The notes below the pieces were generated by a model that did no database searches, had not been told where the DNA came from, and worked only from the letters and a program-made list of their open reading frames with translations. The position numbers and the translations under genes are program-made. Shown here piece after piece: positions 56,623 to 61,344 of a DNA stretch of 64,000 bases; position 1 is the first letter of the stretch, and the number at the start of each line of letters is the position of its first letter. Source of the DNA: Lepidodermella squamata (taxonomy: Eukaryota; Animalia; Gastrotricha); contig JBLDXI010000055.1 of the NCBI GenBank assembly GCA_047495785.1, forward strand, positions 310,001 through 374,000, read 5' to 3'.

Positions 56623-59600
56623 ATGCCAAGGCAGACGGGGAGATGGTGCTATGTCAGTTCAAACCAGGATCGCTTCGACTGGGATGCGTATTTGCGGGAG
56701 ACTGGCGCAACAGCTGCGCCGAAGGAATGTTTTCGTCAGAACGAAAAGCCTCCTGAAAACAAATTCCAACCCGATATGAAACTGGTTACCATCGACCCGA
56801 GAAACCAAAACTCCTGGTGCATAGCCACCGTTATCACCGTTCAAGGTCCGAGAATGCGCTTGCGCCTTGACGGCCTTGACAATATGAATGACACTGTAAG
56901 TTTTGGCTCAGATTTTCCTTTGTATCTAATCGTGCCATAGTAATCAAGCTAAAGATTGAAAGAGGAACAGTTGATCCCATTAAGAGACATGGTTTATTTT
57001 ATTTGAATAGTGTGTTTTTCTTTCGAATTCCGAATTGAATCGAATGCTCAAAAACAAACTTTGCTATCCTATTTCAATCATTTTACGAAACATTTTCGGC
57101 CTTGTAGGCCTAGAGCGTTCATTTTTTCATTCAATTTTTTTTTAGTCGTTCGGATTTCTTGTTGTCCCCGCTTTCTATTGGTTACGGTTACGTCATTCAA
57201 AGAGTACACGGACATTGAATTATTACTGTAAAATTTAACTAATATTATTCTAAGCATTCTAAGCCCAGAATTCTAAATTGAAAGTTTCATGTCATCAAAG
57301 TTTAACGTCCAAGTCTTTGACTTCAATTTTTATAAAACCATCGGCTGTCTTAGTTTTATATTAGTTCTAGCCACATTTGAGAGTTCACATTCGAATAGCA
57401 GATTTTATTCGCCGCCTCAAGTGGTGTTGCCATCTAACGAGTAAGAGATGCTAGCCATTATAATTTTGTTGGAAGAATGGGTTTTTATTAAGTTGGTTTT
57501 GGTTGTTGGCTTCATCTGATTATCTAGTTGAAGATCAAAATTCGATTTGATCTTATCAATAACTTTGCTTTTATCACTTTTGTAGTGGAAATTGGCGGAT
57601 GCCGACGATATCAAGCCGATGTCTTGGGCGCGAGAACGCCCGAATCTCATTGTTCCGCCGCTCGGATTCCTTCCCAGAATGAATTTATGGCCACAATTTC
57701 TCTCTGGCCGCCTTGAAAGCGAAAGCGCCGCCCCGGACGATTGTTTTATTCCCGTAAGTTTGTCTTTAAATACCTAGAGTACCTTTTCTTAAAACTGTTT
57801 CGTTTAGTCTCCATCAACAAGACCGACGGGGCAGTTTGCGGTCGGGCAGAAATTGGAGGCTGTCGACCCGAAAAACCCGTCTATAATTTGTGTTGCCACT
57901 GTCAGCCAAGTGCTACCCGACCGTATCCGCATCGATTTGGACGGCTGGCGCGCTTCTCACTTAGTACCAGTCACCAGTCGCGATATTTTCCCGGTTGGCT
58001 GGTGCGCCAAGGCCGGGCTAAATGTCCAAGAACCAGGGCCGATGGCGACAACCAGTAAACCAGTTCCCACGCCGTCTCAGCCAAACACTAATAATGCTGA
58101 AAACAGCAAGCCAGTCGCCACTGCGTTCGCACGGTCTCGCAACAGTCTTCAACCAGTAAGTAGATTTGCCTTCATCTTCGAACTAATGCGATCTATCAAT
58201 AAGTCGCGCCACAAAAAATATTAATGTCGCGACAGGCGGCGGCTATCTGCGGCGATGATGATAGATCTTAATTCGAATCACGCCCCAACAGCCATAAATA
58301 AATGGCGCGACAGGCGTGTGGTAGTTTAGCGAATGAAATTTATGTGCGCTCGAATGTACTAAAATCGCAGCTCCATATGCTCCATGGCTGTCTGCCGAAC
58401 GCGTTCGCTGGCGCCTGTCTACGGCGGCGAGATGCCTAGTAGCCTATCCCACGATGCCTTTTTTTCTTCACAGTAGCATTATTGCTATTATGGCATTTGA
58501 TAGCTAGTCTTAATAAACTTATCATTTTTTGACATGGCTAATTTTGATAGTGGCAATAATAGCGGTGATATTTTTGTCGCCGAATTTCCTCATCTTGATC
58601 TTACCGTGGATGACGGCAATAGTGATAGTTTGAACACTGCCTCTGCTGATAATAATAACGGTAGCGGCATCAACTACCCGCGCTTTCGAGCTACGCTAAC
58701 GCAGGAACAGATAGTGCTAGCTACCGCGTTATTTTCGGCCGGGGCTCGATCAATCGACGTCGCTCGAACGATAAATTGTTCGCTTCGGGCGGCGCAGCGC
58801 ATCAAGCAAAGAACACGCCCGCCTGAGGGCAGCGGCCAGGCTGTTCACGTGCCTTACGTCGTTAAACGGCGTGGCCGGCGGCCAAGGGCTTTATCGCAGG
58901 ATGGGTCCCAAAATTGTTTAGTTCGTAAAAAAACTAGTTGAAAATTCCTCCTTAATTTAAAATTACCTTTATTTTTTCCAGCAGAGTTTCCTCTCACCCG
59001 ACAATCGGAAACGGCGAAAAAGCTCCGAATCTTCATCAGTGGCTTCAGCGAAGCCAGAGCCATCCGGAGACAGTTCAGCGAGGAAAATTCGTAAAAATCG
59101 TAAAAAGCCTGGCAAGGACGAGCCGGAGTCAAAAGGTTCTGCCGGGGCTGCTGATTCGTCCGCCGTAAAATCAACCAGCAGCGTTGTCGCGACCTCAGAC
59201 GATGAGACAACCGCAGACGACATTGGAAGTCCACTGCGGCTGATTATTGATGAATCTGAAACTGACGCTCATAAATCAAATAACGAAGAAATTGCTGCTG
59301 GTGACAAAACTGGTTCGTCCTCCTTTCTTGTCTTACTTTTGTTTTTGCGGGCAAAAAAATTTTTGCTGCGTAGCGCACGCGCGCTTTTTATGTCGGTGAC
59401 CACAGTTGCTTTTGTCATTTTAACCCAATTGGACGCCACGCATTGAGCTGTTAAGGAGGACAACGGACCTTAGCATGTGAAGTTATTTGTTCATTTTTTT
59501 CGATTTGAATTGATCGATTATGGGCACTTATTCTCGCGTTGATAAAACTAACATACCAACCAGTGTAGCGCAACGCTTACCTGGTTTTGATGTGATGGAA

Positions 59601-61344
59601 ATCAGCGAATATCATCCGCTGCATTATGACCAGAACGGTTGGCTCATTAGAGCTAGGCTGCCGATTCAGCGTCTTGATTGGCCTAGTTTCATAGCCGAAT
59701 TTTGCCGGGATAATTTTGTCCGCCTGAAGCGGGATCCACGCAAGGCTGACCCGGCTAAAGGCAAGAAGGTTATACAAACCGTGTCCTATGTTTGTGTCTG
59801 CGCTGATTGGGATCCATATGGGCGTTCGAAGCGTCCAGAATCCGTCAGCGATCAAGATAGTGACCAGCCGAAAAAAATTCGGTTAATTACCGGGTGTAAA
59901 ATGCGGATAATGATCCGCTTATTAGGCGACAAAGTTGGCGCTAGAACTATGCGGCGCGATCCATTGCGACTGTCCCATCCGACTGAGATTGTTTTGACCT
60001 GGTCTCACAATCACGATCTTGGCATCGGTTACTTTCGCATAATTTTTTTAAATCGAAATTAATTCAGCTTTCGTTTCATTTCTACAGCAGTGTCGACCAA
60101 AGTTGACCCTAGTTCTCCAGCGGATGCTTCGTCTAGTCAGATGGAAACGGACCAGAAAGTGAAGGCGACTGTCGATGCTCCTCAGGCTGACCACAGCAAT
60201 TCAGGGCTTGGCGATCACGCCGTTGCCGAAGAAAAGGTGACGATTTTCGTCAACACCAATTGCATGGTCGGGCCGTACCTCTCGGCGCGAAAACTCAGCA
60301 AAATCGAGAAGAAAACAAGTCCTATGGCACCGAGTGCTGCAGTTCAGGAAATCTTTCATACGATAATGTTAACTGCTACCAATTCATCTGAAGTGCTCAG
60401 AGTTATCACTGAAGCTTTAGTGAGTCATTTGATCCTGGTTTTTATGTGTATAATTTTGTTATTTTCAGGCTGATGGGAAGTTTACTACGTGTGATCCCGT
60501 TGGAAATGACTTATTCGGTGTTGGGAACTCTGTTAAGACCAGTGTCGAGGCCTGGCGTCTAGTTTCGCAAATCGCCGACCACCTCCAGTGCTGCCCTAAT
60601 GTTTTTTCTAGTGTACGTCTCACCAAAGCATGCGCCGACTGCCAACGCTCAGCTTTTATTCTCCGCGCGTCCAAAAGTAGCGTCATCGCTTTAAGCTCAT
60701 CCGAAGCTTCTGGCTCGTCTTCGGCCTCTCAGAGCCCGCATATCACATCTGGAACTGGGAATGTGAGTCATCAAAAAAGTAACCCAGTTCCACCGGTTGT
60801 AAACGGCGGTGGGTTATTGATGCCAAGGATTCAAAATCCAAGTGGCCGAAACCCGGCCACGCCTTGGAGTATCGTGCCACCGACCTCCTCGACCAGCCCT
60901 GCCACTCGTGTGCAATCGAGCTCGGATATACCAACTGTGAGGTCGCCCGATGATGGCAAACCCTCGCCTGCTGGCAAGCGACCGCTTCAAGCTCAGGTTT
61001 TGAAAGGTGGCGTGAGTGCGGCTGCAAGTAGCACCGACTCTCCGCCCCAGTCGCTATCGATGCTGTCCCTGTGTCACATATCGACGACGTCGAGCGTGTC
61101 GGAGTGGACGATTGACGAAGTTTCGGACTTTCTGGCGCGCAACCCGGACCCGTCTCTTGCTCAACACGCCGACTTGTTCCGCAAACACGAGATCGACGGC
61201 AAAGCCCTTCTGCTGCTTAGCTCCGACTCGATACTCAAGTACATGGGTCTGAAGTTGGGGCCATCGCTCAAATTAGGCCACCTCATAGACAGGCTTCGCG
61301 TCACTAGTAGTCGCCAGCCATCTAGCTCCAGCCATCATAAATAA
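56623..61344 (+). CDS. Scm: Polycomb protein Sex comb on midleg (2x MBT, SLED, SAM), canonical isoform
   Basis: Exons 56623-56895, 57586-57753, 57808-58155, 58982-59312, 60088/60091-60419 and 60469-61344 are all phase-compatible. MBT ([10 protein letters not shown]; [10 protein letters not shown]), SLED (C.VGPYL; LQCCPNVFS), SAM ([14 protein letters not shown]...MGLKLGP). Confidence 0.9.
58534..58920 (+). CDS. Intron-nested alternative first exon of Scm: HTH plus AT-hook-like motif
   Basis: [39 protein letters not shown] and KRRGRRPR. Phase-0 GTTCGT donor at 58921 gives a 61-nt intron to the Scm acceptor at 58981. Confidence 0.65.
59520..60027 (+). CDS. Intron-nested alternative first exon of Scm: FAR1/WRKY-GCM1-like Zn finger
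   Basis: YVCVC...[11 protein letters not shown]...WSHNH. Phase-1 donor at 60028 gives a 60-nt intron to the Scm acceptor at 60087. Confidence 0.7.

Follow-up and report, generated by a model that had tools for sequence, protein, structure and literature searches.

The capture of transposase DNA-binding domains by host genes through alternative splicing has been described for 55 distinct host domains; the cases related to chromatin and transcription include KRAB, SET and SCAN, while SAM, MBT and Polycomb are not named in the main text of that study (bioRxiv 10.1101/2020.05.07.082677). In KRABINER and SETMAR, two examples of this class (Cosby et al.), a host chromatin gene carries a transposase DNA-binding exon in one of its introns, where this exon can be spliced beside the parental transcript, and the host part is a repressive chromatin module. 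Another related arrangement is found in Drosophila mod(mdg4) and lola, where a constant interaction domain, the N-terminal BTB/POZ domain, is combined with exchangeable C-terminal DNA-binding exons of one locus, partly trans-spliced from separate transcripts; the variable exons of mod(mdg4) encode FLYWCH fingers of the WRKY-GCM1 superfamily (PMC1702500). Here we analyse a gene of the gastrotrich Lepidodermella squamata, the orthologue of the Polycomb gene Scm (Sex comb on midleg), which occupies positions 56623-61344 of a 64,000-nucleotide (nt) stretch of contig JBLDXI010000055.1, hereafter the window. Its introns 3 and 4 each contain an open reading frame (ORF), referred to as ORF B and ORF C. 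We see the balance as about even for a fusion of the host-transposase type, in which Scm would have captured the two ORFs as 5' coding exons that are used by alternative 5' exon choice, and our confidence in this reading is higher for ORF B than for ORF C.

If so, the locus would resemble KRABINER and SETMAR in carrying intronic DNA-binding exons that can be spliced beside the parental transcript of a repressive chromatin gene. Unlike in that class, the host is an invertebrate Polycomb SLED-SAM gene, which holds two different captured exons; the transposase part would be N-terminal, needing a 5' end of its own and not a transposon-borne acceptor, and the fusion transcripts are proposed ones. 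With mod(mdg4) and lola, Scm would share the principle of a constant interaction domain and exchangeable DNA-binding exons from one locus, with ORF C assigned by homology to the same superfamily as the mod(mdg4) fingers, whereas the variable part is here N-terminal, comes in two variants only and is joined to a constant SLED-SAM part. In Drosophila, the SAM domain of Scm joins the protein to Ph and Sfmbt, and the contacts within the PhoRC-Scm-Ph chain run through SAM domains. The proposed fusions would be comparable to the recruitment of Polycomb repressive complex 1 (PRC1) by Pho-Sfmbt (PhoRC) through Scm, in that a sequence-specific DNA binder is linked to Scm/Ph SAM polymers; in PhoRC, however, Pho is a DNA-binding protein in its own right that is attached to Sfmbt, while here the binder would be fused to the SLED-SAM part of Scm itself. 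Proteins with SLED and SAM domains that lack MBT repeats exist in vertebrates, as judged from names and Pfam lists among the homologues of Scm exon 6 (SCML1/SCML4), but these are encoded by separate genes and have no DNA-binding domain of the ORF B or ORF C sort. The domesticated FHY3/FAR1 factors, in turn, kept the whole transposase, whereas at Scm only the DNA-binding exon remains. Our search of the literature on Scm with transposases or alternative promoters found nothing of this architecture. A preliminary description of the window had presented it as a wholly new principle, which is overstated: it is not reported for Scm, but the capture of transposase DNA-binding domains via alternative splicing as such had been described before (bioRxiv 10.1101/2020.05.07.082677).

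The host gene is an Scm orthologue, as had already been recognised from the sequence. Its six exons lie on the forward strand and join to an open reading frame of 775 amino acids (aa) on translation. Exon 1 (56623..56895) contributes the start codon and the first half of MBT repeat 1 (Pfam MBT, E 1.6e-8), which begins 51 residues after the start of the protein, and is followed by exon 2 (57586..57753) and by exon 3 (57808..58155), which carries MBT repeat 2 (Pfam MBT, E 9e-23) and ends at a phase 0 donor, GTAAGT, at 58156. A basic/acidic linker with KRRK and RKIRKNRKK stretches is encoded by exon 4 (58982..59312), which ends at a phase 1 donor, GTTCGT. The SLED domain starts in exon 5 (60088..60419; Pfam SLED, E 2.6e-10) and ends in exon 6 (60469..61344), which further encodes a Ser/Pro-rich linker, the SAM domain (Pfam SAM_1, E 8e-10) and the stop codon, and is covered by RNA contigs. 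The Pfam order is thus MBT twice (exons 1 and 3), SLED (exon 5) and a C-terminal SAM (exon 6), and a query with exon 6 returned 545 homologues, of which the best-listed are named Scm, SCMH1 or SCML. N-terminal FCS zinc fingers occur in Drosophila Scm, but not in every family member; Pfam found none here, with exon 1 matching MBT alone. All five Scm junctions are present in the RNA contigs of run X1 with GT..AG ends, the one between exons 5 and 6 as well as 56895^57586, 57753^57808, 58155^58982 and 59312^60088, and the latter two establish that both long Scm introns are real.

Each of these introns contains one ORF that starts with ATG and runs to a GT, which precedes the next Scm acceptor by 60-61 nt. 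ORF B (58534..58920, forward strand) comprises 129 codons and has a phase 0 GTTCGT directly after it, at 58921, a hexamer that also forms the confirmed Scm donor at 59313. ORF C (59520..60027, forward strand) comprises 169 codons and one base and is followed at 60028 by GTTACT in phase 1. The acceptors of exons 4 and 5 are both CAGCAG, and the frame stays open to the Scm stop when ORF B is joined to exon 4 or ORF C to exon 5. The positions, phases, GT-to-acceptor distances and acceptor motifs given in the preliminary description were all found to be correct, and so was its statement that the mini-introns would be of typical size: the proposed mini-introns B (58921..58981) and C (60028..60087), both on the forward strand, would measure 61 and 60 nt, compared to 54 and 49 nt for the confirmed short Scm introns. 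No RNA contig extends over about 58898-58981 in mini-intron B, and the RNA depth in mini-intron C is 0 at 60034-60077.

An ATG-started ORF of equal length appeared in 127 of 20000 shuffled introns for ORF B and in 3 of 20000 for ORF C. Moreover, the last GT before each ORF's own stop falls in the required phase (chance 1/3 each), and for both ORFs to combine orientation, phase and short-intron distance, we arrive at a rough chance estimate of (0.04 x 0.5 x 0.33) squared. The own stops of the ORFs (58941 and 60062) are just 40 nt (B) and 25 nt (C) from the next Scm exon, with no AATAAA in between, so that a transcript of either ORF has to extend into the Scm exons; left unspliced, it would consist of a short ORF with a very long 3' untranslated region (UTR). 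The proposal that both ORFs are first exons agrees with the in-frame stops 33 nt (ORF B) and 9 nt (ORF C) upstream of their ATG, but is qualified for ORF B by a possible in-frame upstream acceptor, a TAG at 58501-58503 that is itself the in-frame stop. An exon from 58504 to 58920 (417 nt) would form an in-frame cassette, such that sequence alone leaves the first-exon status of ORF B unproven.

ORF B is a transcribed coding exon under purifying selection. RNA contigs cover it with depths of 29.9, 24.2, 16.5 and 10.7 at the listed positions, falling to 3-4 near 58815-58876, compared to 42-75 for the Scm exons, and in the intron upstream of it the depth is 0 across the 330 nt from 58170 to 58503. 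Plain intron retention was considered as a source of this signal and is ruled out by the contrast between depth 0 upstream and depths of 10-30 on the ORF. Evidence for selection comes from X2, a DNA data set with another strain or organism label, which holds two copies of the locus, identical in some tracts and diverged in others. The preliminary description had pointed to synonymous and non-synonymous rates as informative, and between the two X2 copies all 12 differences listed for ORF B are synonymous (10 at third positions, 2 from CGN to AGN), next to 9 less-supported, unlisted ones of which some are possibly non-synonymous. With synonymous sites making up 27% of the stretch, this corresponds to P about 2e-7, a synonymous divergence (dS) of about 0.19 and a non-synonymous divergence (dN) of 0. 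Both differences listed for Scm exon 2 in the diverged copy are synonymous as well. The k-mer depth of the X2 DNA over ORF B equals that of its flanks, indicating a single copy. We consider it highly probable that ORF B is a functional coding exon.

The origin of ORF B is less clear-cut than the transposase-type helix-turn-helix (HTH) that it had been called. Its product has a head of acidic, low-complexity sequence, a core that resembles an HTH (about residues 50-95) and the basic motif KRRGRRPR. Homologues were found neither in Pfam (E up to 5) nor in the PDB, nor by a word search over 5.8 billion proteins, the limited length window of which leaves room for longer or distant relatives; JGI metagenome contigs, the metagenome contig L001 introduced below and the 64-kb window likewise yielded no relative. 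Language-model features uniformly indicate the HTH_23/HTH_7/HTH_28/PAX clan, with scores of 0.84-0.89 that amount to a lead only, and a single-sequence AlphaFold2 (AF2) model is poor, with a predicted local distance difference test (pLDDT) value of 38 and helices at 57-68 and 73-93. By eye, the core and the KRRGRRPR motif look like the first HTH and the GRPR linker of Tc1/IS630/paired domains. ORF B may derive from a transposase HTH, which at present is a resemblance and a lead. Exact look-ups of the 135-aa and 180-aa products of the two ORFs matched no recorded contig.

For ORF C, the earlier assignment to Mutator-type WRKY-GCM1/FAR1 zinc fingers was borne out. An exhaustive phmmer search over 1.84 billion representative proteins produced a sole match, P0001, a 189-aa sequence with 32% identity (E 6.3e-5; local tblastn E 3.7e-12) that spans ORF C residues 38-169. 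P0001 is encoded on the 10.5-kb metagenome contig L001, where its ORF ends in AA|GTAAGT and is followed by a 52-nt intron and by further exons on the same strand. Of these, one matches the Pfam MULE model with an E value (3e-6) above the curated cut-off, and another carries a SWIM-like CxC...CxH motif, which identifies P0001 as exon 1 of a spliced MULE transposase gene. As in ORF C, the P0001 exon ends at a donor just past the H-x-H motif. The two sequences share the invariant ligands C92, C126, H163 and H165, and their alignment keeps VC(92), GC-K(126), SHPTE and W-x-H-x-H(163, 165). A Cys...insert...Cys...His-x-His ligand pattern is characteristic of those WRKY-GCM1 domains in MULE transposases that contain an insert and are of the FAR1 type (PMC1702500). 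With its alignment to a MULE exon 1 and its C...C...H-x-H ligands, and tentatively also in a predicted strand-helix-three-strand order, ORF C resembles these domains. By its homology to P0001, ORF C is a WRKY-GCM1/FAR1-type finger exon derived from a MULE transposase.

Weak additional support comes from language-model features, which comprise FAR1, ZSWIM3_N, ALS2CR8, AFT and GCM (0.88-0.93 for FAR1, ZSWIM3_N, GCM and AFT), and from a two-sequence AF2 model of low confidence (mean pLDDT 41), which places strands at 41-47, 82-93, 126-137 and 155-163 and a helix at 51-65. The top Foldseek match of this model is a FAR1 domain-containing protein (E 4.6e-4, template modelling score 0.44), again a weak one. 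ORF C had no match in Pfam, FAR1 (PF03101) included, at E up to 1; the PDB searched with the two-sequence profile and a word-index protein search within its length window gave none either, and a metagenome scan with the ORF C and P0001 alignment revealed no relative. On L001, two distinct MULE transposase genes, both of them spliced, are arranged head to head, at 5291-7209 (reverse strand) and 7711-10290 (forward strand), with short introns like those of the Lepidodermella window; comparison of the ORF C profile with the N-terminal ORF of the second of them by hhalign was not significant. The window holds no MULE catalytic or SWIM part after ORF C, and Scm exon 5 starts 60 nt on. Like ORF B, ORF C is single copy by X2 k-mer depth, which matches that of the flanks, and has no paralogue in the window. 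Multi-copy transposable element debris, which the preliminary description had named as the alternative to discard, is thereby ruled out for both ORFs.

A possible trace of a fusion splice is found in the topology of the RNA contigs. The contig that contains the exon 3^exon 4 junction is unbroken from 57859 across the junction, and the lack of a fork at the end of exon 3 (58155) speaks against both a cassette form and the use of NAGNAG from exon 3. After 33 nt of exon 4, roughly one k-mer beyond the second AG of the acceptor, the same contig comes to an end, and the contig depth steps from 42-45 over exons 1-3 to 61 over exons 4-5. The stop in the k=31 graph together with the depth step of 16, which is in the range of ORF B, gives a hint that a second 5' path joins at 58985. 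For ORF C, three points fit an intron start at 60028. A 584-nt tract that is identical in both X2 copies (59450-60033) ends at +6 of the proposed donor; differences start at +7, with 5 substitutions and a 1-nt insertion in the 44 nt from 60034 to 60077 of the diverged copy; and the RNA depth over these 44 nt is 0. We lean towards ORF B serving as an alternative 5' exon that is spliced to exon 4, hold the corresponding use of ORF C to be possible though somewhat doubtful, and place the whole three-isoform picture slightly below the point of balance.

Several observations count against the use of these exons, in addition to the unlisted X2 differences in ORF B. The fusion junctions 58920^58982/58985 and 60027^60088 do not occur in the X1 contigs, which drop minor forms. 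The RNA evidence as a whole is a single small data set in the form of assembled contigs, and the tendency of such contigs to lose rare transcripts has to be borne in mind with the missing junctions. The contigs over ORF B end near 58897, short of its donor, and the depth step at exon 4 could also arise from 3' bias or from a spliced leader joined straight to exon 4. The ORF C donor, GTTACT, is weak. RNA over ORF C reaches 1.8, 5.9 and 3.3 in successive bins, with contigs of depth 3-5 that are all of a fold-back type. An RNA island in Scm intron 1 (57150-57400, depth about 3.5), which has no ORF, consists of fold-back ('opposite strands') contigs too, indicating that such low coverage is background in X1, and the ORF C signal does not exceed this level. 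In the X2 copies, not only ORF C but also the neighbouring intron sequence is identical, so that there is no selection signal either way. Finally, the homologues retrieved with exon 6 are all distant Scm relatives, with no close species among them for a comparison of the introns.

It is against this background that the other explanations of the two ORFs have to be weighed. The most serious of them, which we nonetheless find unlikely, accepts ORF B as a true alternative exon and regards ORF C as a silent, undecayed relic of a MULE insertion, the 5' part of the element, which came to lie near the exon 5 acceptor by chance and makes no protein. The background level of ORF C RNA, its weak donor and its location in a tract without selection signal would all be expected of a relic, as would a 17-nt imperfect inverted repeat that brackets ORF C (59493-59509 and 60047-60063) in the manner of worn element ends. 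This repeat is 82% complementary and AT-rich, and represents either worn MULE ends or chance; a target-site duplication around ORF C was not seen, which speaks against this reading. Difficult to reconcile with a silent relic is also that all 169 codons are intact and that the four zinc ligands, SHPTE and W-x-H-x-H were kept at just 32% identity to the nearest known MULE, while the single-copy k-mer depth leaves no young multi-copy family. The correct phase and the 60 nt to the acceptor would have to be accidental, and so would the onset of variation in the diverged copy only at +7 past the proposed donor. Less probable still is that the ORFs are separate nested genes for small stand-alone DNA-binding proteins of 135 and 180 aa, which end at their own stops (58941 and 60062) and keep the mini-introns. 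Each ORF has its own ATG and stop, the RNA contigs contain no fusion junction, and MULEs are known to have given rise to WRKY-GCM1 proteins that stand alone (PMC1702500). However, with 40 and 25 nt to the next exon and no polyadenylation signal, such genes would have to use the downstream Scm exons as 3'UTR, in a nonsense-decay-like configuration; RNA coverage is absent at 58899 and at 60034-60077, the diverged copy has its 1-nt insertion and a stop-codon change in the ORF C tail, and the phase and short-intron distance of both ORFs would be a coincidence.

Two further explanations concern splicing from exon 3 and appear improbable. ORF B could be an in-frame cassette (58504-58920, 417 nt) included via the TAG acceptor ending at 58503, which would give an MBT-MBT-HTH-linker-SLED-SAM protein and no swap of the N-terminus. 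Its length is a multiple of 3, there is no stop from 58504 on, and the first bin covered by RNA is the one starting at 58504. However, 58503 is preceded by a poor pyrimidine tract (6/12), the contig passes from exon 3 to exon 4 without a fork at 58155, no 58155^58504 joint is listed, and the depth is lower in exons 1-3 than in exons 4-6. We give very little weight to the idea that the ORFs are incidental to regulatory 'poison' exons, where exon 3 would be cis-spliced to the acceptor at 58473 and run into an immediate TAG, leading to decay of the Scm mRNA. The acceptor at 58473 is indeed very strong and directly followed by an in-frame TAG, but the 12 synonymous and 0 non-synonymous listed differences indicate that the ORF B frame itself is selected, a 58155^58474 joint does not occur, and the depth at 58474-58503 is 0.

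In the fusion reading, which we prefer, the default mRNA of exons 1-6 encodes the MBT-MBT-linker-SLED-SAM protein. A second mRNA would begin at or just upstream of exon B, either from an internal promoter or by spliced-leader addition at the 58473 acceptor, and would be spliced from GTTCGT (58921) to the acceptor of exon 4 (58982, or the second AG, 58985), yielding a protein of about 642 aa in which the HTH-like core and the basic motif precede the linker, SLED and SAM. A leader added to the same primary transcript would free exon B from the need for its own promoter. A third mRNA, rarer or conditional, would start at exon C and be spliced from GT (60028) to exon 5, for a product of about 571 aa with the MULE-derived WRKY/FAR1 zinc finger in front of SLED-SAM. 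In both alternative proteins, the methyl-lysine-reading MBT pair would be swapped for a DNA-binding module while the SAM domain is retained, and they would thereby anchor SAM polymers of Polycomb proteins at specific DNA sequences. Within this scheme, we infer both fusion splices, where the transcripts start, that the modules bind DNA and that Polycomb is recruited. In its fullest form, which we put forward tentatively, three proteins with a common SLED-SAM polymerising tail and an MBT, an orphan HTH-like or a Mutator-derived finger module would be made from intron-embedded 5' exons, possibly leader-added, as a built-in sequence-specific Polycomb recruiter, perhaps first aimed at the ends of the parent transposon.

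The upstream part of intron 3 (58156..58533, forward strand) may serve exon B as a promoter, as its 5'UTR or as a site of trans-splicing. The GC fraction of the intron segment upstream of ORF B is 0.47-0.50, compared to 0.31-0.35 in intron 1, and a 19-nt repeat with the exact core CGCGACAGGCG is present at 58220-58238 and 58298-58316 (cores at 58228 and 58306, 78 nt apart), with a partial inverted copy at 58407-58419. This GC-rich repeat segment could be a promoter, a cluster of binding sites or an old transposon end; Rfam found no RNA family over 56000-62000, and the segment hence corresponds to no known RNA gene. Two strong acceptors have no paired donor: cctttttttcttcacag, which ends at 58473 and precedes the ORF B ATG by 60 nt, and ttattctttttag, which ends at 56596 and precedes the Scm ATG by 27 nt, while 5' of ORF C there is only a weak unpaired acceptor, ccttag, ending at 59473. 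In their position and their lack of a paired donor, these three acceptors fit spliced-leader trans-splicing. No spliced-leader sequence was seen in the X1 contigs, the sole loose cDNA end in which is at 56620, 3 nt 5' of the Scm ATG; the sequence joined to it resembles a SMART-type cDNA adaptor.

It has long been asked how Polycomb complexes locate their targets outside Drosophila response elements. If the proposed splices exist, DNA-binding domains naturally fused to the SLED-SAM part of Scm would constitute a direct and testable Polycomb recruiter, and transposase capture by splicing, which is documented mainly in vertebrate KRAB, SCAN and SET hosts, would extend to an invertebrate Polycomb gene. 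What would then be new is the host itself, a Polycomb gene of the SLED-SAM type, together with the loss of the MBT reader through an exchange of the N-terminus and the capture of two exons by a single gene. Should the splices be absent, the Scm introns would harbour one conserved orphan coding exon or small gene and, nested likewise, a MULE relic.

Over 56500-61500, the two X2 copies form a mosaic, in which identical tracts (57859-58742 and 59450-60033) alternate with tracts of about 19% synonymous divergence, and divergence prevents an alignment of Scm intron 1 in the second copy. Such a pattern points to gene conversion or recombination, with deep haplotypes or homeologues as the partners. 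Around the Scm ATG, the bin 56500-56666 has an RNA depth of 348, probably from the 3' end of the highly expressed gene upstream of Scm, a 332-codon ORF (55213-56211) that has the look of an enoyl-CoA reductase, by eye only. Elsewhere in the window, a unit of 1.0-2.7 kb is repeated in tandem about five times at 38159-45329, in diverged copies of 61-89% identity that look like the lineage-specific expansion of a gene family, and a segmental duplicate of about 0.9 kb with 93-100% identity is present at 6820-7707 and 10503-11340, about 3.6 kb apart.

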